A stretch of DNA of 64,000 nucleotides from Basidiobolus meristosporus CBS 931.73 (taxonomy: Eukaryota > Fungi > Basidiobolomycota), in the NCBI GenBank assembly GCA_002104905.1, contig MCFE01000034.1, forward strand, positions 124,001 through 188,000. Reading direction: 5' to 3'. Positions 9,137 to 22,381 of this stretch are shown here, in pieces; position 1 is the first letter of the stretch, and each line of letters starts with the position of its first letter. Under the pieces are notes generated by a model. That model worked only from the letters and a program-made list of their open reading frames with translations. It was not told where the DNA came from and made no database searches. The position numbers and the translations under genes were made by a program.

Positions 9137-10639
9137 CTAGTTCTTTCTGAGCGCGATGCTACGTAGAGCATTTCTTATTTCAATTGCTCTCTTATAGGCC
9201 TTGTGACCAGCTCCGTTACCGCTATAGTCCTTTGTGTCATAATTGCTCCCACCACCATTGCCACCATAGCTTTCTTTGTGATCACCTCCATAGTCCTTGG
9301 TATCATAGTTATTGCCACCGCTATTTCCACCGTAATTCTTTTCGTGATCGCCTCCATAGTCCTTGGTATCATAGCTATCACCGCTTCCGCCACCATTTCC
9401 CCCGTAACTCTCTTCATGATCACCTTCATAGTCCTTGGTATCATAGCTATCGCCATTTCCACCGTAATTCTTTTCGTGATCGCCTCCATAGTCCTTGGTA
9501 TCATAGCTATCACCGCTCCCGCCACCATTTCCGCTGTAACTCTCTTCATGGTCACCTCCATAGTCCTTGGTATCATAGCTATTGCCACCGCCATTACCGC
9601 CATGGCTTTCTTCACGATCGCCTCCATAGTCCTTGGTATCATAGCTATCACCGCTTCCGCCACCATTTCCCCCGTAACTCTCCTCACGATCGCCTCCATA
9701 GTCCTTGATATCATAGCTATCACCGCTCCCGCCACCATTTCCCCCGTAACTCTCTTCATGGTCACCTACATAGTCCTTGGTATCATAGCTATTGCCATCG
9801 CCATTACCGCCATGGCTTTCTTCACGATCGCCTCCATAGTCCTTGGTATCATAGCTATCACCGCTTCCGCCACCATTTCCCCCGTAACTCTCTTCATGGT
9901 CACCTACATAGTCCTTGGTATCATAGCTATTGCCATCGCCATTACCGCCATGGCTTTCTTCACGATCGCCTCCATAGTCCTTGGTATCATAGCTATCACC
10001 GCTCCCGCCACCATTTCCCCCGTAACTCTCTTCATGGTCACCTACATAGTCCTTGGTATCATAGCTATCACCGCTCCCGCCACCATTTCCCCCGTAACTC
10101 TCCTCATGATCACCTTCATAGTCTTTGGTATCATAGCTATCACCGCTTCCGCCACCATTTCCCCCGTAACTCTCTTCACGATCGCCTCCATAGTCCTTGG
10201 TATCATAGCTATCGCCATTTCCACCACCATTTCCACCATAGTCTTCCTCATGATCACCCTCGTACTCATTGGTGTCATAGCTATCACCACTTCCGCCACC
10301 ATTTCCACCATAGCTTTCCTCATGGCTACCTTCATAGTCTTTTGTATCGTAACTGTCACCGCCGCCGCCACCACCTCCGCTCCCGCCATAGCTATCTTCG
10401 TGATCACCTTCGTACTCTGTTGTATCATAGCTGTCACCTGATCCTCCGCCATTACCTCCATAGTCGCCAGTATCGTAAGATCCACCACTGCCATTTCCTT
10501 CATATTCTGTGTCACCTCCATGGCCTCCTCCGCCAGAGTAATCCTTCACATCATAGCTGCCGGCACCAGAGTAGTCACCGGTGGGTAGTGCAGAGACAGA
10601 GGCAACATATAGAAGTGCTGTGATGAGGGTTGCTTTCAT
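9137..10639 (-). CDS. Secreted Gly/Asp/Tyr-rich repeat protein, copy 1 (500 aa, 20 [SN]YDxx[DE]Y units)
   Basis: Signal-like MKATLITALLYVASVSA-LP. About 24-aa repeat GGNGGGSGDSYDTKDYGGDHEESY. Ends GHKAYKR-AIEIRNALRSIALRKN. TATA at about 10728-10734, AATAAA at 8997-9002. Confidence 0.9.
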   Translation of the reverse strand: MKATLITALLYVASVSALPTGDYSGAGSYDVKDYSGGGGHGGDTEYEGNGSGGSYDTGDYGGNGGGSGDSYDTTEYEGDHEDSYGGSGGGGGGGDSYDTKDYEGSHEESYGGNGGGSGDSYDTNEYEGDHEEDYGGNGGGNGDSYDTKDYGGDREESYGGNGGGSGDSYDTKDYEGDHEESYGGNGGGSGDSYDTKDYVGDHEESYGGNGGGSGDSYDTKDYGGDREESHGGNGDGNSYDTKDYVGDHEESYGGNGGGSGDSYDTKDYGGDREESHGGNGDGNSYDTKDYVGDHEESYGGNGGGSGDSYDIKDYGGDREESYGGNGGGSGDSYDTKDYGGDREESHGGNGGGNSYDTKDYGGDHEESYSGNGGGSGDSYDTKDYGGDHEKNYGGNGDSYDTKDYEGDHEESYGGNGGGSGDSYDTKDYGGDHEKNYGGNSGGNNYDTKDYGGDHKESYGGNGGGSNYDTKDYSGNGAGHKAYKRAIEIRNALRSIALRKN

Positions 10640-10840
10640 TTTGATGCAATTGCTTTGTTCTAAGGGAGTGAATGCGGTAGAATGATATGAGATGAGTATA
10701 GTTGATACGGGTGAAGGGGGAGCGGGCTTTTATATCGTTAAATTGGCTAAGATCGATTGTCAGGGCCATTTCCCAGCTGAAATTGTTGTAAGGTGCACAG
10801 TAATGGTGGCATGCAGGTGGATCGTTGATTTGCAGCAGCA
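10190..10840. repeat. About 650-nt near-identical duplication of about 11976-12626 (5' coding region plus promoter of copies 1 and 2)
   Basis: Offset 1786 nt. The first ~149 codons are identical and only about three substitutions were seen in the upstream part. Confidence 0.85.
10811..10819 (+). promoter_or_regulatory. Conserved ATGCAGGTG (E-box-like) element upstream of copy 1
   Basis: 172 nt upstream of the ATG; same position in seven paralogues. Confidence 0.5.
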
Positions 10841-11177
10841 CGCTCCGTCAGTTGCATCTGGTAAATGAACCCTGTCGTGATACAGCGATATTTTATTGAC
10901 TTCAAAAAATTTACAGGCGCACGTAGAATACATTGAGCATCATCAAAGTATACATAGGCGAGTAGCAGCGTGAGCATATATAGATGGGCAGTTAAATGAG
11001 TATATTTAGTTAGAGATCAGATAGTGAAAACTCAATTTATTGAAATGCATTTTGCAGGTATAGATGGAGATCTATAGGGGCATTTAGTATTCATGAGGCT
11101 AAGCCGGTAATGTCATGTATGTATTAGTTAATAAAATAATGAGGTAGATTCAACCATCTTTCATGATGCTAGTTATC

Positions 11178-12425
11178 TTAGACCTTTCCAACTACAATCT
11201 TTCGAAGGGCATTCCTGACCTCAATTGCTCTCTTATAACTTTTGTGACCTGATGCGTAATCCTTGGTATCGTAGCTGTTCCCACCACCATTTCCACCATA
11301 GTTTTCCTCGTGATCACCCTCATAGTCTTTGGTATCATAGCTGTTACCGCCTCCATTGCCACCATAGTTCTTTCCGTGATTCTTGCAGTGCTTCGACTTG
11401 TGCTTACCGCCGTAGCTATCTTCATGATTACCACCATGGCCGCCTCCATTCCCTCCGTAACTATCTTCATGATCGCCTCCGTAGTCCTTGGTATCATAGC
11501 TATTACCACTTCCACCGCCGTTGCCTTGATAAGTATCCTCGTGGTCACCCTCATAGTCTTTTGTATCGTAGCTGTCACCACCACCATTCCCACCATAGTT
11601 CTCATCATGATCGCCTTCATAATCGCCACTACTATAGCTGTCTTCCTGTTCTCCCTCGTAGCCTTTAGTACCATAGCTATTGTCGCCTCCTCCGCCACTA
11701 CCACCATAGTTATCGTCGTGGTCACCCTCATAGTCTTTGGTGTCGTATCTATCACTACCACCGCCACTACCGCCATAATCTTCGGTAGCATAACTGTTGT
11801 CACCCCCACCGTTACCACCATAGTTCTCTTCATGATCACCCTCGTACTCATTGGTGTCATAGCTATCACTGCCGCCATTACCGCCATAACTCTCCTCATG
11901 ATCGCCTCCATAGTCCTTGGTATCATAGCTATCGCCACCACCATTTCCCCCGTAACTCTCTTCATGATCACCTTCATAGTCCTTGGTATCATAGCTATCG
12001 CCATTTCCACCACCATTTCCACCATAGTCTTCCTCATGATCACCCTCGTACTCATTGGTGTCATAGCTATCACCACTTCCGCCACCATTTCCACCATAGC
12101 TTTCCTCATGGCTACCTTCATAGTCTTTTGTATCGTAACTGTCACCGCCGCCGCCACCACCTCCGCTCCCGCCATAGCTATCTTCGTGATCACCTTCGTA
12201 CTCTGTTGTATCATAGCTGTCACCTGATCCTCCGCCATTACCTCCATAGTCGCCAGTATCGTAAGATCCACCACTGCCATTTCCTTCATATTCTGTGTCA
12301 CCTCCATGGCCTCCTCCGCCAGAGTAATCCTTCACATCATAGCTGCCGGCACCAGAGTAGTCACCGGTGGGTAGTGCAGAGACAGAGGCAACATATAGAA
12401 GTGCTGTGATGAGGGTTGCTTTCAT
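11178..12425 (-). CDS. Secreted Gly/Asp/Tyr-rich repeat protein, copy 2 (415 aa)
   Basis: Same signal peptide and N-terminus as copy 1. Unique GKHKSKHCKNHGKN insert. Ends GHKSYKR-AIEVRNALRKIVVGKV. AATAAA at 11036-11041. Confidence 0.9.
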   Translation of the reverse strand: MKATLITALLYVASVSALPTGDYSGAGSYDVKDYSGGGGHGGDTEYEGNGSGGSYDTGDYGGNGGGSGDSYDTTEYEGDHEDSYGGSGGGGGGGDSYDTKDYEGSHEESYGGNGGGSGDSYDTNEYEGDHEEDYGGNGGGNGDSYDTKDYEGDHEESYGGNGGGDSYDTKDYGGDHEESYGGNGGSDSYDTNEYEGDHEENYGGNGGGDNSYATEDYGGSGGGSDRYDTKDYEGDHDDNYGGSGGGGDNSYGTKGYEGEQEDSYSSGDYEGDHDENYGGNGGGDSYDTKDYEGDHEDTYQGNGGGSGNSYDTKDYGGDHEDSYGGNGGGHGGNHEDSYGGKHKSKHCKNHGKNYGGNGGGNSYDTKDYEGDHEENYGGNGGGNSYDTKDYASGHKSYKRAIEVRNALRKIVVGKV

Positions 12426-12596
12426 TTTGATGCAATTGCTTTGTTCTAAGGGAGTGAATGCGGTAGAATGATATGAGATGAGTATAGTTGATATGGGTGA
12501 AGGGGGAGCGGGCTTTTATATCGTTAAATTGGCTAAGATCGATTGTCAGGGCCATTTCCCAGCTGAAATTGTTGTAAGGTGCACAGTAATGGTGGC

Positions 12597-12605
12597 ATGC
12601 AGGTG
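12597..12605 (+). promoter_or_regulatory. Conserved ATGCAGGTG element upstream of copy 2
   Basis: 172 nt upstream of the ATG. Confidence 0.5.
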
Positions 12606-13523
12606 GATCATTGATTTGCAGTAGCACGCTCTTATCCAGGGATTTAAGTCTAAGCTTGTATTCTTCTTTATGCAAGGGTATAATACTCATGATCTACCCG
12701 GAGGGAATTCTATTATTTCCATAATTCAATTATATCTACCTGCTAAATGGATCGTAGCTTTACCTACTTTTCAGTATTGCTGTGATCACAATGTGGACGA
12801 ACGTCAGGAGGACATGACAACGATATGCAAATTACTTGACTTTAAAGGATTCATATGTAAAGATTGCTTAATCCAGGTGTATTTGGGCTAACTTTAGGAG
12901 ATGCTTGGAATTTGCTGTATTGCGATAAATTGATAAAGATATTTGGATGTATTTTTCCACCCCCACAGTTGCATCTTTCTTATCGTAACTACTGATGCCC
13001 ATGAAGTGTACCCACATTGCTACATCACATCCTGATCCACAGCTAGTTACGTATAAACTGTAAATGCTACAATTCTCTTCCTATTCTTTGACGGAGAGTT
13101 ATTTTTCAAAAATACCGAAAATAGCCGCGACTGGAATGTCCATCAACGTTGTCAACTTGTGTTGGGAATCTTATGGTCAGTTCAGTGATCGTTTTCTTCA
13201 TATCTCTCATCATTACCTCCATTTTACGCTATGGAGTAGAATGCTAAGCATCTGGCTAACTATACACACATCAATAAATTAGGTTCAATGTCATTATAAA
13301 TACTACGAGTACGACGGAGGCCATTTTATTGACTTGTATTTTGGGTGCAATCTTAATTTCGGTAGAGTGGAAAAGGGATGCGTCTGAGTTGGAAGTGCTT
13401 TGCCCACGGAGTTTTGAAAGGTGCTAACGCGGGAAAAAAAGAATAGTACGGGTTTGGGATAGACGGGCTGGAATAACACTAGCCAACCGAGGTATACTCA
13501 ACAGACAAGGCCAATTTACCATT

Positions 13524-14345
13524 TCAAACCTTCCTTACAGCAATGCTCCTTAGAGCCTCCCTGAATTGAACTGATCTTTTGTAGCTCTTGTGGCCAGCTC
13601 CATTACCACCGTAGTCTTGTGTGTCGTAGCCATTGCCGCTGCCACTTCCACTGCCACCATTTCCACCGTAGCTGTTATCGTGATCAGCTCCATAATCCTT
13701 GGAATCATAACTGTCACCACCGTTGCCATCATTGCCACCATTGCCACCATTGCCATTATCATATTCGCCCCCATGATCACCACCTTTTCCGCCATATCTC
13801 TTGTCATGATCACCTCCATAGACCTTGGTGTCGTAGCTGGTACCACTACCACCACCATTCCCTTCATAGCTCTCGTCATAGTCTCTTTCATGACCACCAC
13901 CATTTCCACCATAGCTTTCGTCATGATCACCCCCATAGTCTTTGGTATCGTAGCTGTTGCCACTACCACCACCACCACCATTTCCGCCATAGCTATCACT
14001 GTGATCACTTTCATACTCAGTTGTATCATAACTGTTACCGCCTCCACTTCCCCCACCCCCATTACCACCGTAACTTTCCTCATGGTCACCTTCATAGTCT
14101 CCGCTGTTGTAGCTGTCGCCTGATCCTCCACCGCTACCTCCATGATTGCCACTATCATAAGATCCTTCATCATTGTCATTACTATGCCCATTACCTTCGT
14201 AGTCTTTGCTACCACCATATCCTCCGCCACCAGAGTAATCTTTCACATCATAACTTCCAGCGCCACCATTGCCAGAATAGTCACCAGAGGGTAATGCCGA
14301 GACAGAGGCGATGTAGAGAAGGGCTACGATGAGGGCTACTTTCAT
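13524..14345 (-). CDS. Secreted Gly/Asp/Tyr-rich repeat protein, copy 3 (273 aa)
   Basis: MKVALIVALLYIASVSA-LP. Ends GHKSYKR-SVQFREALRSIAVRKV. TATAAATA at 14430-14437, AATAAA at 13325-13330. Confidence 0.9.
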   Translation of the reverse strand: MKVALIVALLYIASVSALPSGDYSGNGGAGSYDVKDYSGGGGYGGSKDYEGNGHSNDNDEGSYDSGNHGGSGGGSGDSYNSGDYEGDHEESYGGNGGGGSGGGNSYDTTEYESDHSDSYGGNGGGGGSGNSYDTKDYGGDHDESYGGNGGGHERDYDESYEGNGGGSGTSYDTKVYGGDHDKRYGGKGGDHGGEYDNGNGGNGGNDGNGGDSYDSKDYGADHDNSYGGNGGSGSGSGNGYDTQDYGGNGAGHKSYKRSVQFREALRSIAVRKV

Positions 14346-14514
14346 TTTGTGGTTGTTGCTTTTGTCCTTGAGTTGCGCCTCGAATAGAACGATGCCAGAG
14401 GAATGTGTTTGATGAGAATAGAGATTGCATATTTATACCACCACCACACCATGAATAATCAATGTGGTCAATTCCTTGCTCAATAGCACATGTAGGGTGT
14501 ATACTGACGGGGAT

Positions 14515-14523
14515 ATGCAGGTG
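14515..14523 (+). promoter_or_regulatory. Conserved ATGCAGGTG element upstream of copy 3
   Basis: 170 nt upstream of the ATG. Confidence 0.5.
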
Positions 14524-15102
14524 GATCATTGCATTACAATCACTTTTGGTTCGCTACTTGTGTAGGGAAAGATCGTGATGATAACTATACTTGAGTAAGG
14601 AGATCCGTACATTCGGGTATATCCAGCCCTTGTGAAATCGTCTTGTATAGCACCAAGGGATTGGTATAACAGATTGCTACATCATTTGGAGTAGTGTGTG
14701 ATTAGTAAGAATGTTTCGCTATGAATCAAGTGAATCAACTGGTATTCTCTTGCTCCTCATACATCAGAGATGCCATACGGATAATTAGTCATCGAAAATA
14801 GCATTACAATGCGCATCATGAAGGAGTCGTATGGGTATATTTATATTTACTAGATCATGCTCAGATCGTTGGTGATGATGGTTAAGCGTATGATGAGGGT
14901 GACTTTATTGGGATATACTTTGGGCACGATGGATTGGCTGGTGAAATGTATTAAGAATGCGTCTAAGCTGCAAATGCTTTTCTAACATCAGTTCGTAGGG
15001 TGACAGCCTGTGAAGTAATGAACAGTATGGCTATGAGTCAAATACACAACACGAAGACAGCATGAGCCGGAGCGTAGTCACGGGGTGGGGCCAGCAGTCA
15101 TT

Positions 15103-15993
15103 TCAGGCCTTCCTTATAGCAATGCTCCTTAGAGCCTCCCTGAATTGAACTGATCTTTTGTAGCTCTTGTGGCCAGCTCCATTACCACCGTAGTCTTGTG
15201 TGTCGTAGCCATTGCCGCTGCCACTTCCACTGCCACCATTTCCACCGTAGCTGTTATCGTGATCAGCTCCATAATCCTTGGAATCATAACTGTCACCACC
15301 GTTGCCATCATTGCCACCATTACCATTATCATATTCTCCCCCATGATCACCACCCTTTGCGCCATAGCTCTTGTCATGATCACCGCCATAGTCCTTGGAG
15401 TCATATCTGTCGCCACCACCATTACCACCATGGCTGGCATCGTAATCACCCTCATGGCCACCTCCATTTCCGCCGTAGCTCTCCTCATAGTCGCCACCTT
15501 GGCCTCCTCCATCTCCACCATAGCTTTCGTCATGATCACCCCCATAGTCTTTGGTATCGTAGCTGTTGCCACTACCACCACCACCACCACCACCACCACC
15601 ACCATTTCCGCCATAGCTATTACTGAGATCACCTTTGTATTCAGTTGTATCGTAACTGTCACCGCCACTACTGCCACCACCACCACCACCACCACTTGCC
15701 CCACCTCCACTACCACCGTAACTTTCCTCATGGTCACCTTCATAGTCTCCGCTGTTGTAGCTGTCGCCTGATCCTCCACCGCTACCTCCATGATTGCCAC
15801 TATCATAAGATCCTTCGTCATTGTCATTACCATGCCCATTCCCTTCGTAGTCTTTGCTACCACCATATCCTCCGCCACCAGAGTAATCTTTCACATCATA
15901 ACTCCCAGTGCCACCATTGCCAGAATAGTCACCAGAGGGTAATGCTGAGACAGAGGCGATGTAGAGAAGGGCTGCGATGAGGGCTACTTTCAT
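15103..15993 (-). CDS. Secreted Gly/Asp/Tyr-rich repeat protein, copy 4 (296 aa; poly-Gly tracts from (GGT)n)
   Basis: MKVALIAALLYIASVSA-LP. (ACC)n run on + at about 15571-15603. Ends GHKSYKR-SVQFREALRSIAIRKA. TATA at 16080-16087, AATAAA at 14904-14909. Confidence 0.9.
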   Translation of the reverse strand: MKVALIAALLYIASVSALPSGDYSGNGGTGSYDVKDYSGGGGYGGSKDYEGNGHGNDNDEGSYDSGNHGGSGGGSGDSYNSGDYEGDHEESYGGSGGGASGGGGGGGSSGGDSYDTTEYKGDLSNSYGGNGGGGGGGGGGSGNSYDTKDYGGDHDESYGGDGGGQGGDYEESYGGNGGGHEGDYDASHGGNGGGDRYDSKDYGGDHDKSYGAKGGDHGGEYDNGNGGNDGNGGDSYDSKDYGADHDNSYGGNGGSGSGSGNGYDTQDYGGNGAGHKSYKRSVQFREALRSIAIRKA

Positions 15994-16960
15994 TTTGTGG
16001 TTGTTGCTTTTGTCCTTGAGTTGTGCCTCGAATAGAACAATACGGGAGGAATATGCTTGAATGGGGTAGAATGCCGCGCTATTTATACGTCCTCAAACGG
16101 GTCAAGACCACTTGATACATCTACATTTTGCCTAACGTAGGTATAGGGCTCATGTTGATGTTGTGATGCAGGTGTACCATAGGATTGCATCTGCTTAAAC
16201 CCCATCATTTTCATCCGGTTAATCGTCCTTCGGATGGCCGGATTCTGCACTAGATTCCTGTTGCTAGGTCGCATTGTGCCCGATCTATGTTGCTGTAGTC
16301 GATCGTGGTAAGGTACAGGCTTCTGTATTGGATCAAGCCTCGGAGGTGAAAAAGGCTCTACCAAGATCAGACTACTTTCCCACATTCTTGGTGATTATGT
16401 AGGGCCGATATGCGATGCTATGGTGTCGATTTGGGAGACCTACAGGCTTAGAGCCACCACACTGCAGTACAGAAACACACTGAAATGATTTGGGGTGCGA
16501 TGAGAGTAGCTTTATTGGGATGCATTTTGGGTGCAATTGATCGCCTGGTAAAATGGAATAGCAATGAATCTAAGCTGAGAATGCTCTTCTAACATCAATT
16601 CGTAGGGTGATAGCATGTGAAGTAGTGAATAGTATGCTATGAGTCAAATACGCAACACGAAGACAGCATGAGCCGGAGCGTAGTCGCGGGGTGGAGCCAG
16701 CAGTCATTTCAGGCCTTCCTTATAGCAATGCTCCTTAGAGCCTCCCTGAATTGAACTGATCTTTTGTAGCTCTTGTGGCCAGCTCCATTACCACCATAGT
16801 CTTGTGTGTCGTAGCCGCTACCGCTGCCACTTCCACTGCCACCATTTCCACCGTAGCTTTCATCGTGGTCAGCTCCATAAACCTTGGAATCATAACTGTC
16901 ACCACCGTTGCCATCATTGCCACCATTGCCATTATCATATTCGCCTCCATGATCACCACC
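15715..16960. repeat. About 1.25-kb near-identical duplication of about 17210-18455 (period 1495 nt)
   Basis: Starts 15993 and 17488, and stops 16709 and 18204, are each 1495 nt apart. The intergenic blocks differ at only about two positions that I could spot. Confidence 0.88.
16166..16174 (+). promoter_or_regulatory. Conserved ATGCAGGTG element upstream of copy 4
   Basis: 173 nt upstream of the ATG. Confidence 0.5.
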
Positions 16961-17488
16961 ATTTCCGCCATAGTCCTTGGAGTCATATCTGTCGCCACCA
17001 CCATTGCCACCATGACTGCCATTGTAATCACCCTCATGGCCACTACCATTTCCTTCATAGCTCTCCTCGTAGTCTTCTTCACGTCCTCCACTTCCGTCAT
17101 AGCTCTTCTTGTGGTCGCCACCATTTCCGCCATAGCTATCACCGTGACCACTTTCATACTCAGTTGTATCATAACTATCACTGCCACCAGTTCCTCCACC
17201 CCCATTACCACCGTAACTTTCCTCATGGTCACCTTCATAGTCTCCGCTGTTGTAGCTGTCGCCTGATCCTCCACCGCTACCTCCATGATTGCCACTATCA
17301 TAAGATCCTTCGTCATTGTCATTACCATGCCCATTCCCTTCGTAGTCTTTGCTACCACCATGTCCTCCGCCACCAGAGTAATCTTTCACATCATAACTTC
17401 CAGCGCCACCATTGCCAGAATAGTCACCAGAGGGTAATGCTGAGACAGAGGCGATGTAGAGAAGGGCTGCGATGAGGGCTACTTTCAT
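16709..17488 (-). CDS. Secreted Gly/Asp/Tyr-rich repeat protein, copy 5 (259 aa)
   Basis: Same architecture. Ends GHKSYKR-SVQFREALRSIAIRKA. AATAAA at 16511-16516. Confidence 0.9.
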   Translation of the reverse strand: MKVALIAALLYIASVSALPSGDYSGNGGAGSYDVKDYSGGGGHGGSKDYEGNGHGNDNDEGSYDSGNHGGSGGGSGDSYNSGDYEGDHEESYGGNGGGGTGGSDSYDTTEYESGHGDSYGGNGGDHKKSYDGSGGREEDYEESYEGNGSGHEGDYNGSHGGNGGGDRYDSKDYGGNGGDHGGEYDNGNGGNDGNGGDSYDSKVYGADHDESYGGNGGSGSGSGSGYDTQDYGGNGAGHKSYKRSVQFREALRSIAIRKA

Positions 17489-17660
17489 TTTGTGGTTGTT
17501 GCTTTTGTCCTTGAGTTGTGCCTCGAATAGAACAATACGGGAGGAATATGCTTGAATGGGGTAGAATGCCGCGCTATTTATACGTCCTCAAACGGGTCAA
17601 GACCACTTGATACATCTACATTTTGCCTAACGTAGGTATAGGGCTCATGTTGATGTTGTG

Positions 17661-17669
17661 ATGCAGGTG
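17661..17669 (+). promoter_or_regulatory. Conserved ATGCAGGTG element upstream of copy 5
   Basis: 173 nt upstream of the ATG. Confidence 0.5.
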
Positions 17670-18203
17670 TACCATAGGATTGCATCTGCTTAAACCCCAT
17701 CATTTTCATCCGGCTAATCGTCCTTCGGATGGTCGGATTCTGCACTAGATTCCTGTTGCTAGGTCGCATTGTGCCCGATCTATGTTGCTGTAGTCGATCG
17801 TGGTAAGGTACAGGCTTCTGTATTGGATCAAGCCTCGGAGGTGAAAAAGGCTCTACCAAGATCAGACTACTTTCCCACATTCTTGGTGATTATGTAGGGC
17901 CGATATGCGATGCTATGGTGTCGATTTGGGAGACCTACAGGCTTAGAGCCACCACACTGCAGTACAGAAACACACTGAAATGATTTGGGGTGCGATGAGA
18001 GTAGCTTTATTGGGATGCATTTTGGGTGCAATTGATCGCCTGGTAAAATGGAATAGCAATGAATCTAAGCTGAGAATGCTCTTCTAACATCAATTCGTAG
18101 GGTGATAGCATGTGAAGTAGTGAATAGTATGCTATGAGTCAAATACGCAACACGAAGACAGCATGAGCCGGAGCGTAGTCGCGGGGTGGAGCCAGCAGTC
18201 ATT

Positions 18204-18989
18204 TCAGGCCTTCCTTATAGCAATGCTCCTTAGAGCCTCCCTGAATTGAACTGATCTTTTGTAGCTCTTGTGGCCAGCTCCATTACCACCATAGTCTTGT
18301 GTGTCGTAGCCGCTACCGCTGCCACTTCCACTGCCACCATTTCCACCGTAGCTTTCATCGTGGTCAGCTCCATAAACCTTGGAATCATAACTGTCACCAC
18401 CATTGCCACCATTGCCACCATTGCCATTATCATATTCGCCTCCATGATCACCGCCATTACCACCATGACTGTAATCGTAATCACCCTCATGGCCACCTCC
18501 ATTTCCACCATAGCTCTCCTCATAGTCGCCACCTTGGCCTCCTCCGCTTCCACCATAGCTTTCATCATGATCACCCCCATAGTCTTTGGTATCGAAGCTG
18601 TTGCCACTACCACCACCACCACCACTTCCGCCATAGCCATCACTGTGATCACTTTCATACTCAGTTGTATCATAACTGTCACTACCACCAGTTCCTCCAC
18701 CCCCATTACCACCGTAACTTTCCTCATGGTCACCTTTATAGTCTCCGCTGTTGTAGCTGTCGCCTGATCCTCCACCGCTACCTCCATGATTGCCACTATC
18801 ATAAGATCCTTCGTCATTGTCATTACCATGCCCATTACCTTCGTAGTCTTTGCTACCACCATATCCTCCGCCACCAGAGTAATCTTTCACATCATAACTT
18901 CCAGCGCCACCATTGCCAGAATAGTCACCAGAGGGTAATGCCGAGACAGAGGCGATGTAGAGAAGGGCTGCGATGAGGGCTACTTTCAT
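18204..18989 (-). CDS. Secreted Gly/Asp/Tyr-rich repeat protein, copy 6 (261 aa)
   Basis: Same architecture. Ends GHKSYKR-SVQFREALRSIAIRKA. AATAAA at 18006-18011. Confidence 0.9.
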   Translation of the reverse strand: MKVALIAALLYIASVSALPSGDYSGNGGAGSYDVKDYSGGGGYGGSKDYEGNGHGNDNDEGSYDSGNHGGSGGGSGDSYNSGDYKGDHEESYGGNGGGGTGGSDSYDTTEYESDHSDGYGGSGGGGGSGNSFDTKDYGGDHDESYGGSGGGQGGDYEESYGGNGGGHEGDYDYSHGGNGGDHGGEYDNGNGGNGGNGGDSYDSKVYGADHDESYGGNGGSGSGSGSGYDTQDYGGNGAGHKSYKRSVQFREALRSIAIRKA

Positions 18990-19158
18990 TTTGTGGTTGT
19001 TGCTTTTGTCCTTGAGTTGCGCCTCGAATAGAACGATGCCTGAGGAATGTGTTTGATGAGAATAGAGATTGCATATTTATACCACCACCACACCATGAAT
19101 AATCAATGTGGTCAATTCCTTGCTCAATAGCACATGTAGGGTGTATACTGACGGGGAT

Positions 19159-19207
19159 ACGCAGGTGGACTATTGCATTACGATAACATATACTCCACCA
19201 CCTGCAT
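19159..19207. promoter_or_regulatory. ACGCAGGTG element (19159-19167) plus an inverted perfect copy CACCTGCAT (19199-19207) upstream of copy 6
   Basis: First element is 170 nt upstream of the ATG; second is the exact reverse complement of ATGCAGGTG. Confidence 0.45.
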
Positions 19208-19726
19208 GTGGGATTTAGGCGGGCAACTAGAATCGGGGCAGATATATTTAAATCAAGTATAAATGAGCAATAATTATAGGTTGGCATGATGAGATTTCCT
19301 TTACAGATCACTACATTTTCGGGAGGAGTGGATCAGAATAATAAGCAAACGATTTATATGTTTTTGGTGCTTCTCGCTCACTATTCCTTTATGGCTGCAC
19401 GTTGATAACAAGTCCTTGCCATAGAACTGCATTATAGGTAGTAAAGAAGGTATCTGGGTATATCCACATACACAAGATTATGCTCAGATCGTCAGTACTA
19501 ATAGCTTAGTGTACGATGAAGGTGACTTTATTGGGATGTATTTTAGGCGCGACGCATTGTCTGGTAAAATGGATTAGGAATACGATCAAGCTCCAAGTGC
19601 TCTTCTAGTATTACTTTGATGGATGGTAATATGGGTAATAGATAATAGAATGGAGTTGTGCCAATCGAGCTAGATCCACACTCCACGCACTCAGACTCAC
19701 TGAAGAGACATGGTCAATAGGCTATT

Positions 19727-20602
19727 TCAGACCTTTCTTGTAGCAATGCTCCTTAGAGCCTCCCTGAATTGAACTGATCTTTTGTAGCTCTTGTGGCCAG
19801 CTCCATTACCACCATAGTCTTGTGTGTCGTAGCCGCTGCCGCTGCCACTTCCACTGCTACCATTTCCACCGTAGCTTTCATCGTGGTCAGCTCCATAAAC
19901 CTTGGAATCATAACTGTCACCACCATTGCCACCATTGCCACCATTGCCATTATCATATTCGCCTCCATGATCACCACCATTTCCACCATAGCCCTTGTCA
20001 TGATCATCTCCATAGTCCTTGGAGTCATAGCTGTCGCCACCACCATTGCCACCATGACTGCCATTGTAATCACCCTCATGGCCACCACCATTTCCGCCAT
20101 AGCCATCATCATGTTCACCTCCATAGTCCATGGTGTCGTAGCCGCTACCACTACCACCACCATTTCCTTCATAGCTCTCCTCGTAGTCTTCTTCACGTCC
20201 TCCACTTCCGTCATAGCTCTTCTTGTGGTCGCCACCATTTCCGCCATAGCTATCACCGTGATCACTTTCATACTCGGTTGTATCATAACTATCACTGCCA
20301 CCAGTTCCTCCACCCCCATTACCACCGTAACTTTCCTCATGGTCACCTTCATAGTCTCCGCTGTTGTAGCTGTCGCCTGATCCTCCACCGTTACCTCCAT
20401 GGTTACCAGTATCATAAGACCCTTCATCATTGTCATTACCATGTCCATTCCCTTCGTAGTCTTTGCTACCACCATGTCCTCCGCCACCAGAGTAATCTTT
20501 CACATCATAACTTCCAGCGCCACCATTGCCAGAATAGTCACCAGAGGGTAATGCTGAGACAGAGGCGATGTAGAGAAGGGCTGCGATGAGGGCTACTTTC
20601 AT
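19727..20602 (-). CDS. Secreted Gly/Asp/Tyr-rich repeat protein, copy 7 (291 aa)
   Basis: Same architecture. Shares the DHKKSYDGSGGREEDYEESYEGNG block with copy 5. Ends GHKSYKR-SVQFREALRSIATRKV. AATAAA at 19527-19532. Confidence 0.9.
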   Translation of the reverse strand: MKVALIAALLYIASVSALPSGDYSGNGGAGSYDVKDYSGGGGHGGSKDYEGNGHGNDNDEGSYDTGNHGGNGGGSGDSYNSGDYEGDHEESYGGNGGGGTGGSDSYDTTEYESDHGDSYGGNGGDHKKSYDGSGGREEDYEESYEGNGGGSGSGYDTMDYGGEHDDGYGGNGGGHEGDYNGSHGGNGGGDSYDSKDYGDDHDKGYGGNGGDHGGEYDNGNGGNGGNGGDSYDSKVYGADHDESYGGNGSSGSGSGSGYDTQDYGGNGAGHKSYKRSVQFREALRSIATRKV

Positions 20603-20774
20603 TTTGTGGTTGTTGCTTTTGTCCTTGAGTTGTGCCTCGAATAGAACAATACGGGAGGAATATGCTTGAATGGGGTAGAATGCCGCGCTATTTATACGTC
20701 CTCAAACGGGTCAAGACCACTTGATACATCTACATTTTGCCTAACGTAGGTATAGGGCTCATGTTGATGTTGTG

Positions 20775-20783
20775 ATGCAGGTG
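20775..20783 (+). promoter_or_regulatory. Conserved ATGCAGGTG element upstream of copy 7
   Basis: 173 nt upstream of the ATG. Confidence 0.5.
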
Positions 20784-21352
20784 TACCATAGGATTGCATC
20801 TGCTTAAACCCCATCATTTTCATCCGGCTAATCGTCCTTCGGATGGTCGGATTCTGCACTAGATTCCTGTTGCTAGGTCGCATTGTGCCCGATCTATGTT
20901 GCTGTGGGTGGATCACATTAGTACATTAGCTTACATCTCTTTACCTGCATATAGTGGATGGTTTTATATGTGGGTGAATGATATTTTCATGCTCTGCCCC
21001 ATACGAGCATGCTATCTTGGATATATATTTTGCGCACCTAAATGATGATCCAGAAAAATGCTGGTTGCTATATGGTTTGATCTACAACTTTGATTACCTT
21101 AGGAATTCCTCATATGAGAATATTCCTAAGTTTACACCAGTGATCTGGGACATGAAGTAAAATGAAGATTGCTTTATTGGTTTGCATATTGAGCTCAGGC
21201 TTGGGCCTAAATATACATCGTGTTCTTGAAAGCAGGTTGGTATTGTTATTCTAGTGTTGGGTGATGTAATGAATTGATGGGGCTTTGAATATATCGCGCC
21301 TCAGAGCTCCTCATACTGTGACTAGAGCAAGATGATGGAACTGGAATGTATC

Positions 21353-22381
21353 TCAGTTCCCTCGGAGTGTTACGCCTCGCAAGATATTTCTAACTTGAAC
21401 TGATCTCTTGTAACTCTTGTGACCAGATCCATTGCCACTGTAATCTTTTGTATCGTAACCGCTTCCGCCCCCACCATTTCTGCCGTAATTTCCCTCATGC
21501 TCACCCTCATGGCCGCTACCATTATAGGCCTTAATGTCGTAGCTATTACCGCTACCACCACCGCCATTGCCGCCATAGCTCTCTTCATAATCACCTCCGT
21601 GACCACCACCACCGTTACCGCCATAGCTTTCCTCATTGTCGCCTCCGTGACCACCACCATTACCGCCATAGCTTTCCTCATAGTCGCCATCATGACCACC
21701 GCCATTTCCGCCGTAGCTATCATCGTGATCACCTCCATAATCTCCAGTATCGTAGCTGTCGCCTCCACCGCCTCCACCATTACCGCCATAGCTCTCTTCA
21801 TGATCGCCTCCATGGCCACCGCCGTTACCTCCGTATTCCTCGGTGTCATAGCTACTTCTACTGCCGCCACCTCCGTTACCACCATAGCTCTCTTCGTAGT
21901 CTCCTCCATGGCCACCACCATTACCGCCGTAGCTCTCTTCATGGTCACCTCCATAATCATTGGTGCCATAGCTATCACCACCTCCGTTACCACCATAGCT
22001 GTCGTCGTAATCTCCACCATCGCCACCGCCATTTCCACCGTAGCTCTCTTCATGGCCTCCTTCATAATCACCTTCGCCACCACCACCATTACCACCGTAG
22101 CCCTCTTCATGATCGCCTCCATAGTCCTTAGTATCATAGCTATTACCATTACCGCCACCACCATTTCCACCATAATTGTTTCCATTGGAATCATAGCCGC
22201 CGCCTCCACCGCCCCCATTTCCTCCATGATTACCAGTATCGTAGGAGCCACCGTGGCCATTTCCTCCGCCAGAATAGTCTTTGACGTCGTAACCTCCAGC
22301 CCCATTTCCGGAATGATCACCAGTGGGTAGGGCAGAGATGGAAGCGATGTAAAGCAGAGTTGTCATAAGTGTCACCTTCAT
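21353..22381 (-). CDS. Secreted Gly/Asp/Tyr-rich repeat protein, copy 8 (342 aa, most divergent)
   Basis: MKVTLMTTLLYIASISA-LP. GG[DE][HY]EESYGGNGGG repeats. Ends GHKSYKR-SVQVRNILRGVTLRGN. TATAAAAG at about 22446-22453, AATAAA at 21173-21178. Confidence 0.88.
   Translation of the reverse strand: MKVTLMTTLLYIASISALPTGDHSGNGAGGYDVKDYSGGGNGHGGSYDTGNHGGNGGGGGGGYDSNGNNYGGNGGGGNGNSYDTKDYGGDHEEGYGGNGGGGEGDYEGGHEESYGGNGGGDGGDYDDSYGGNGGGDSYGTNDYGGDHEESYGGNGGGHGGDYEESYGGNGGGGSRSSYDTEEYGGNGGGHGGDHEESYGGNGGGGGGDSYDTGDYGGDHDDSYGGNGGGHDGDYEESYGGNGGGHGGDNEESYGGNGGGGHGGDYEESYGGNGGGGSGNSYDIKAYNGSGHEGEHEGNYGRNGGGGSGYDTKDYSGNGSGHKSYKRSVQVRNILRGVTLRGN

Follow-up and report, generated by a model that had tools for sequence, protein, structure and literature searches.

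A tandem array of predicted secreted, acidic Gly/Tyr-repeat proteins in Basidiobolus meristosporus: candidate polymers of an extracellular material

The GY array and its predicted products

Basidiobolus meristosporus is a frog-gut fungus. In the genome assembly of strain CBS 931.73 (GCA_002104905.1), a 64-kb window of scaffold MCFE01000034.1 was analysed; "the window" refers to this whole stretch, and positions are counted from its first letter. It contains a tandem array of eight genes, here called GY1-GY8 in window order, which encode predicted secreted proteins built from acidic repeats rich in Gly and Tyr. These proteins are candidates for the polymers of an extracellular material. The preliminary description of this DNA had counted only the eight genes, but the family comprises at least 15 genes in two arrays: eight in the window and seven in a second array (array B) on MCFE01000223.1.

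All eight window genes are minus-strand open reading frames (ORFs) without interruption. They are given below with their lengths in amino acids (aa), as taken from the ORF listing, and with the codons of a conserved Lys-Arg pair (KR) and of the 16-residue tail that follows it.

9137-10639, minus strand: GY1, 500 aa, about 15 units of 24 aa; signal peptide codons 10589-10639, KR codons 9188-9193, tail codons 9140-9187
11178-12425, minus strand: GY2, 415 aa; KR 11229-11234, tail 11181-11228
13524-14345, minus strand: GY3, 273 aa, short subtype; KR 13575-13580, tail 13527-13574
15103-15993, minus strand: GY4, 296 aa, short subtype; KR 15154-15159, tail 15106-15153
16709-17488, minus strand: GY5, 259 aa, short subtype; KR 16760-16765, tail 16712-16759
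18204-18989, minus strand: GY6, 261 aa, short subtype; KR 18255-18260, tail 18207-18254
19727-20602, minus strand: GY7, 291 aa, short subtype; KR 19778-19783, tail 19730-19777
21353-22381, minus strand: GY8, 342 aa, 15-aa units of the HGGDYEESYGGNGGG type; KR 21404-21409, tail 21356-21403

The listing bears out the eight intact same-strand ORFs of 259-500 aa that had been reported. The common layout described for them (signal peptide, LP, repeats, GHK[SA]YKR and 16 aa) also holds in all eight proteins. In the alignment, the N-terminus MK..LLY.AS.SA|LP is invariant, and the C-terminus always consists of GHK[SA]YKR and exactly 16 further residues. In the window, a tblastn search with these two conserved ends returned each of them exactly eight times. 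In every detail checked, the earlier sequence description was right.

Tandem Repeats Finder resolved the repeats of GY1 into 15 copies of a 72-nucleotide (nt), i.e., 24-aa, unit, GGNGGGSGDSYDTKDYGGDHEESY, and those of GY8 into 45-nt (15-aa) units. The 24-aa unit carries six acidic residues, one Lys, one His and three Tyr, and its charge is about -5. Across the eight proteins, Gly makes up 28-38% (GY8 being the most Gly-rich member with 38%), Tyr 10-12%, Asp 9-15% and Ser 9-13%. Phe, Trp, Cys, Pro and Gln account for about 0-1% each, and the Pro content of 0.2-0.4% corresponds to a single Pro after the signal peptide. Lys reaches 2-5%, there is almost no Arg in the repeats, and the net charge ranges from -28 to -80. 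The spacing between Tyr residues shows sharp peaks at 5, 8 and 11 residues; Ser or Asp precedes the Tyr, and Gly, Asp or Glu follows it. Ser and Thr together amount to about 14%, and N-glycosylation sequons number 0-2 per protein. The repeat body is predicted to be disordered. AlphaFold2, run with the family alignment, yielded a mean predicted local distance difference test score (pLDDT) of 41.6. The model has no helices beyond those of the signal peptide and the C-terminus, and the C-terminal helix (last 20 residues, residues 238-257) had a pLDDT of only about 50.

Signal peptides of 17 aa are encoded by all 15 genes of the family, with an MK n-region, a hydrophobic core of 12-13 residues and V/I-S-A at positions -3 to -1; both the peptide and its cleavage were assigned by the -3/-1 rule only. 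The predicted mature start (residues 18-19) is Leu-Pro in 15 of 15 proteins, an X-Pro dipeptide of the kind used as substrate by Ste13-type dipeptidyl aminopeptidases. Each protein has one dibasic site of the form [KR]R, located before the tail, and GY3 has one extra, an internal KR at residue 182. Kexin typically acts on KR pairs that lie exposed in disordered proteins secreted by fungi. The invariant KR is likely a kexin site, a feature which the preliminary description had overlooked. The tail itself has a net charge of +3 and follows the pattern [SA][VI][QE]hR[ENK][AI]LRx[IV]xh[RKG][KG]x, where h is a hydrophobic residue. Folding of the tail into an amphipathic helix was considered and rejected: its helical hydrophobic moment (Eisenberg, 100 degrees) is 0.15-0.33, no higher than that of shuffled sequences, which have a mean of about 0.32 and of which 42-86% reach the tail value. 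The tail could serve as an escort for the polyanion or be a separate bioactive peptide.

A TATA box in every copy and an AATAAA 135-195 nt past the stop had both been noted earlier, and both were found again in eight of eight window genes. The promoter and 3' signals lie at the following positions:

GY1, minus strand: TATAAA 10729-10734; CACCTGCRT 10811-10819; AATAAA 8997-9002
GY2, minus strand: TATAAA 12515-12520; CACCTGCRT 12597-12605; AATAAA 11036-11041
GY3, minus strand: TATAAA 14432-14437; CACCTGCRT 14515-14523; AATAAA 13325-13330
GY4, minus strand: TATAAA 16082-16087; CACCTGCRT 16166-16174; AATAAA 14904-14909
GY5, minus strand: TATAAA 17577-17582; CACCTGCRT 17661-17669; AATAAA 16511-16516
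GY6, minus strand: TATAAA 19076-19081; CACCTGCRT 19159-19167; AATAAA 18006-18011
GY7, minus strand: TATAAA 20691-20696; CACCTGCRT 20775-20783; AATAAA 19527-19532
GY8, minus strand: TATAAA 22448-22453; no CACCTGCRT; AATAAA 21173-21178

The TATAAA box is located at -92 to -95 from the ATG (-72 in GY8), with like spacing in array B. The E-box-like CACCTGCRT motif stands at -178 to -181 in seven of the eight window genes and is found in six of the seven array-B genes, the GY8 type being without it in both arrays. Its position is kept even between groups of promoters that share only about 45% identity elsewhere. The window contains nine matches against 0.99 expected, and eight of the nine fall within the array. 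The motif fits co-regulation of the genes; as the promoters are paralogous, it is suggestive only. Tandem amplification with conserved promoters is typical of stage-specific structural gene clusters.

Selection, duplication and distribution of the family

Array B consists of seven genes, of 338, 259, 264, 259, 239, 423 and 402 aa. Its gene order is the same as in the window (Sec61-beta, Omp85, the array, PH, EB1, Sec6 and a Na/H exchanger), and its flanks share about 90% DNA identity with the window. Positions 1-29263 of the window, housekeeping flanks included, are present twice in the assembly, with the second copy on MCFE01000223.1 at about 90% DNA identity and a synonymous divergence (dS) of 0.25 for the PH gene pair. 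The two copies of the region are either homeologs, resulting from genome duplication or hybridisation, or very divergent haplotypes. All 15 genes of the two arrays are intact, with a signal peptide, YKR and the 16-residue tail. Only B3 departs from the pattern, with a Pro in the tail and GNK instead of GHK.

The ratio of nonsynonymous to synonymous substitution rates (dN/dS) was determined for the repeat bodies of three homeologous pairs, A1/B1, A2/B2 and A8/B7 (A1-A8 being GY1-GY8), with the neighbouring PH gene as a comparison. It is 0.07 for GY1/B1, 0.08 for GY2/B2 and 0.18 for GY8/B7, at dS values of 0.31-0.84, and the PH gene pair has a dN/dS of 0.12 at a dS of 0.25. The value for A8/B7 is independent of the repeat alignment, because that alignment contains only four gap columns. 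For the last 23 codons (KR and tail), the ratio of nonsynonymous to synonymous differences per site (pN/pS) is 0.31 among paralogs, with synonymous sites near saturation. The GY genes are protein-coding and under purifying selection in the called frame, in the repeat body as well as in the tail.

Between homeologs, Tyr is the most conserved residue (96%), followed by Gly (93%), Lys (91%), and Asp and Glu (84-86%). The lengths are 500 vs 402 aa for GY1/B1, 415 vs 423 aa for GY2/B2 and 342 vs 338 aa for GY8/B7, and the tails of GY8 and B7 are identical. Free length combined with a constrained unit fits a polymer.

A tree built on the conserved ends pairs the genes at the array edges across the two arrays (A1/B1, A2/B2 and A8/B7). 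The middle genes group by array, A3-A7 apart from B4-B6, which indicates that duplication or homogenisation of these genes took place within each array once the two had separated. Traces of exchange are also seen inside the window array. The first 165 or so residues (495 nt) of GY1 and GY2 are identical in protein sequence, and their 3' ends have diverged. The two 715-nt spacers on both sides of GY5, between GY4 and GY5 (15994-16708) and between GY5 and GY6 (17489-18203), differ at only about two positions, and the genes beside and between them differ in length. Together with the shared 5' half of GY1 and GY2, the near-identical spacers form a mosaic that points to unequal crossing-over or gene conversion in the array. 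The spacer between GY2 and GY3 (12426-13523), which borders the long and short subtypes, measures 1098 nt, the others 538-757 nt; a tblastn search of it with the conserved ends found no gene remnant.

The preliminary description had raised the concern that most copies might be assembly duplications, and this was checked by k-mer depth in Logan contigs, using two runs of a single sample. Depths of 166 and 159 were obtained for the unique spacer between GY3 and GY4, and depths of 336-364 and 311-336 in the same two runs for the near-identical spacer between GY4 and GY5; k-mer depth is not a strict copy number, and both runs may stem from the sample used for the assembly. The roughly twofold depth is as expected for two real copies. 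Assembly duplication is therefore not supported, and the copies are supported as real.

A relative was found in Basidiobolus ranarum. KAK9759633.1 is a partial 85-aa "hypothetical protein" on a 2.4-kb contig, and its ORF runs into the contig end. Its first 39 residues match GY8 at 56% identity (E = 4e-12). On this contig (JASJQH010003432.1, 739-1221), the relative adjoins a gene for a secreted CAP/PR-1 domain protein, of which no counterpart was found in the window. Since the neighbourhood differs in this way from that in B. meristosporus, the relative may be a further, non-syntenic member of the family.

Searches for other relatives were made in several collections. An exhaustive profile search of 1.84 billion representatives returned only the B. 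ranarum fragment and one spurious Asp-rich match. No family was found for five members in a Pfam scan at E<=1, no match in a PDB profile search, and none in a word-indexed protein search with the entire protein, its first 70 or its last 60 residues. No ESM Atlas match scored above 0.78, which falls short of the reliable range. Arthropod GYR/YLP motif proteins were rejected as relatives, with Atlas scores of only 0.59-0.64 and no Pfam match to GYR (PF02756) or YLP (PF02757). Pattern scans of JGI metagenomes and 185,579 prokaryote genomes gave pattern matches only, none of which was confirmed, so there is no sign of a bacterial origin. A description of the GY family was not found in the literature on Basidiobolus adhesives, the secretome or glycine-/tyrosine-rich proteins. 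The earlier statement that no known family is recognisable still stands, as the Pfam, PDB and protein searches gave none, nor any strong full-length match to a characterised family.

An exact look-up of the eight window proteins in a protein collection found none of them present. The clustered protein collections likewise fail to return the annotated proteins of both arrays, though the gene-position index holds them. As the collections seem to be without even the annotated array proteins, blank results in them are uninformative on other fungi. The family is present in two Basidiobolus species and, by sequence searches within collections that seem to lack even its annotated members, is apparently restricted to the genus. 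More generally, annotated low-complexity proteins can be absent from large clustered collections, which makes blank searches weak evidence.

Candidate function and competing explanations

The explanation favoured here, to which about an even chance is given, is that the GY proteins would be secreted, disordered, polyanionic Gly/Tyr repeat polymers for an extracellular material, tandem-amplified in Basidiobolus. The body is constrained like a housekeeping protein, the unit is kept while the copy number drifts, and Tyr is near-invariant at fixed spacing; the repeat polymer itself would thus be the functional product. Secretion, disorder and six acidic residues against one Lys per 24-aa unit make a hydrated extracellular material its most likely role.

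This explanation starts from what is directly supported, namely the reality of the genes, their architecture, the predicted disorder, the selection on repeat body and tail, and the copy number. It extends from there to a proposed cleavage, location, cross-linking and biological site. Each gene would be transcribed from its own TATA promoter, in most cases with a CACCTGCRT motif at a fixed position and presumably under common regulation. The signal peptide would be cut after Ser-Ala, and kexin in the Golgi would cut after the invariant Tyr-Lys-Arg, removing the basic tail of 16 residues. The mature polymer of about 220-460 residues, with a charge of about -0.1 to -0.2 per residue, would be deposited outside the cell as hydrated matrix, spore-surface or mucilage material. 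There, the regularly spaced, nearly invariant tyrosines may form cross-links or serve as stickers, while cations or cationic partners may be bound by Asp, Glu and His.

A lineage-specific spore-coat, adhesive or matrix family had been proposed in the preliminary description, with Basidiobolus as a conditional guess for the host. The host was guessed correctly, and the separately promoted genes, the signal peptides, the predicted disorder, the lack of a known family and the single outside relative in B. ranarum lend support to such a family. Purifying selection on the repeat body and the regular, near-invariant Tyr agree with a material or structural role to which Tyr is important; the strongly acidic composition, poor in Lys and Arg, speaks against a mussel-type protein.

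Several points weigh against the polymer explanation. The codons of the array are not shifted to those preferred by its neighbours, and there is consequently no codon-level sign of very high expression. In the eight array coding sequences, TAT reaches 63% (38% in the neighbouring housekeeping ORFs), AAT 81% (38%) and AGY serine codons 77% (31%), a bias that was probably inherited from the single unit that was amplified and is not the work of translational selection. Polyanions of such charge density repel each other, and condensing them would need cations or cationic partners. The conserved 16-aa tail is unexplained if it is simply discarded. In diatoms, the Tyr-rich protein AC3362 was chosen by its composition as a glue candidate and proved to be a wall protein (PMC4220933).

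An unlikely alternative is a non-covalent polyanionic hydrogel or cation binder (Ca, Zn, Cu via Asp, Glu and His) that serves as anti-desiccation mucilage or gut coat without oxidative Tyr cross-linking. It would suit the six acidic residues, one Lys and one His of each 24-aa unit as well as the predicted disorder, and Ser and Thr might carry O-mannose in proteins with so few N-glycosylation sequons. However, it fails to explain why Tyr is kept better than Asp and Glu between homeologs, or why the spacing of Tyr is so strict.

It is improbable that the proteins are peptide precursors, in which kexin would free the +3 C-terminal peptide of 16 residues as the functional, antimicrobial or signalling, product, and the acidic body would be a neutralising pro-piece. 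The order of signal peptide, acidic region, KR and short cationic peptide is found in 15 of 15 genes, the peptide always having exactly 16 residues, and the tail is under purifying selection. The B. meristosporus strain also tops 1461 fungal strains in predicted Kex2-processed repeat proteins (PMC7329392). Nevertheless, a pro-piece of 220-460 aa is very uneconomical for one 16-mer, and its charge of -28 to -80 goes far beyond what would neutralise +3. A mere spacer would not need to be constrained like a housekeeping gene with 96% conserved Tyr, and the tail is not an amphipathic helix. Precursors of antimicrobial peptides in frog skin and insects share the same order of elements and the asymmetry of charge. 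In contrast to them, the GY proteins have a tail that is not amphipathic and an acidic part that is 10-20 times longer, repetitive and itself constrained.

Fungal Kex2-processed repeat proteins (KEPs), such as Rep1 and the alpha-factor precursors, are secreted repeat proteins with a conserved KR and in this resemble the GY proteins, which also carry a predicted signal peptide, as expected of KEPs. To count as a KEP, a protein needs three or more repeated motifs with KEX2 sites between them, and the Rep1 peptides of Ustilago maydis are structural on the hyphal surface (PMC6339444). The GY repeats, by contrast, contain no dibasic sites, and a single KR precedes a non-repeated tail (with the one extra site in GY3). 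Membership in the KEPs was rejected on this ground, and none of the GY motif strings was found in the scanned supplements of the KEP survey.

A quite improbable extension of the polymer explanation is that the polyanionic GY polymers and secreted cationic partners form a fungal complex coacervate or a resilin-like, Tyr-cross-linked gel, either in the capilliconidial droplet or in an elastic wall layer for conidial discharge. If true, fungi would have evolved a protein glue or elastomer system independently.

The closest functional analogue of the GY repeats is resilin, and the resemblance counts in favour of the polymer explanation. Insect pro-resilin is, as predicted for the GY proteins, a secreted and disordered protein rich in Gly; its repeats hold one conserved Tyr, set in a D-S-Y-G context, along with spacers of the GGGN type, and its isoelectric point is low. 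Resilin is a Tyr-cross-linked elastomer, and its exon-1 unit, GGRPSDSYGAPGGGN, contains DSY and GGGN elements (PMC7794388). Unlike pro-resilin, with which they share no sequence homology, the GY proteins are without a chitin-binding domain. Two of the 15 residues of the resilin unit are Pro, compared with 0.2-0.4% in the GY proteins. The resilin unit is neutral, with one Arg and one Asp, and has one Tyr, whereas the 24-aa GY unit has a charge of about -5 and three Tyr. The chitin-binding R&R domain (Pfam Chitin_bind_4) was not found in five GY members (Pfam, E<=1), nor does the Pro-containing elastic repeat of the PSDSYGAPGGGN type (PMC7794388) occur in the GY proteins, whose sole Pro follows the signal peptide. 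Assignment to resilin or the cuticular R&R proteins was rejected for the missing chitin-binding domain and Pro repeat and the different charge.

Basidiobolus makes adhesive capilliconidia. It is nonetheless very doubtful that the GY proteins are the glue of the capilliconidial adhesive droplet. The host is a Basidiobolus and the proteins are of low complexity with predicted secretion, but their acidic, Lys-poor composition is unlike that of known Tyr/DOPA (3,4-dihydroxyphenylalanine) glues. The DOPA adhesives of the mussel foot are basic and Lys-rich, with Tyr or DOPA beside Lys, in contrast to GY proteins with a charge of -28 to -80 and 2-5% Lys.

Least of all can the array be an artefact, i.e., ORFs that arose by chance in low-complexity repeat DNA, or copies introduced during assembly: the GY repeats are open in several further frames as well, and two 715-nt spacers are almost identical, but start, signal peptide, conserved end and a dN/dS well under 1 exist only in the called frame, and this explanation is refuted by the 15 intact copies, which differ in length and sequence, by dN/dS and by the twofold k-mer depth in both runs.

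Gly/Tyr low-complexity glues and elastomers are known from animals and plants. Wall proteins that are cross-linked by peroxidases, such as the glycine-rich ones of plants and the Tyr-rich ones of coccidian oocysts, resemble the GY proteins as secreted Gly-/Tyr-rich low-complexity proteins, and tick cement GRP is a disordered Gly-rich glue protein (PMC11794139). These plant, coccidian and tick proteins differ from the GY proteins in being neutral or basic, or in using Arg-aromatic contacts, and no homology was detected. A fungal counterpart was not found in the literature searched. While secreted structural proteins of this kind, encoded in gene arrays, are familiar from animals and plants, a fungal version that is strongly acidic, free of Pro and equipped with a basic tail behind a putative kexin site appears, as judged from sequence, to be new. 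With its 15 genes, this is a conserved candidate family in a fungus with ballistic conidia, adhesive capilliconidia and a gut-passage life cycle, and it could give a new polyanionic, Tyr-rich biomaterial.

Neighbouring genes and public gene models

The array is flanked by fungal housekeeping genes, among others those for Sec6, a PH-domain protein, IleRS, the AROM pentafunctional enzyme and a Fungal_trans factor. In the public protein collection, the PH-domain protein shares a cluster at 90% identity with ORX93811.1 of B. meristosporus CBS 931.73. The surroundings had been described as an intron-rich housekeeping region. This is right for most of the neighbours, which have introns in the public models, and does not extend to the adjacent PH gene, which has none.

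Public annotation calls genes on the array ORFs, so that the array genes are unnamed (hypothetical proteins), not unannotated. The models of GY1-GY3 are identical to the ORFs given here. Those of GY4 and GY5 are 330 and 293 aa long; they begin 160 nt further upstream and remove, as an intron, 58 nt bounded by GT..AG, in which the TATAAA box is located. The added parts are located as follows:

15994-16153, minus strand: N-terminal extension of the public GY4 model, which would bury the signal peptide
17489-17648, minus strand: N-terminal extension of the public GY5 model, which would bury the signal peptide

Both extensions are probably mis-predicted, because in all other copies, and in the B. 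ranarum relative too, translation begins with the conserved MK(V/A) codon a short way downstream of a TATA box.

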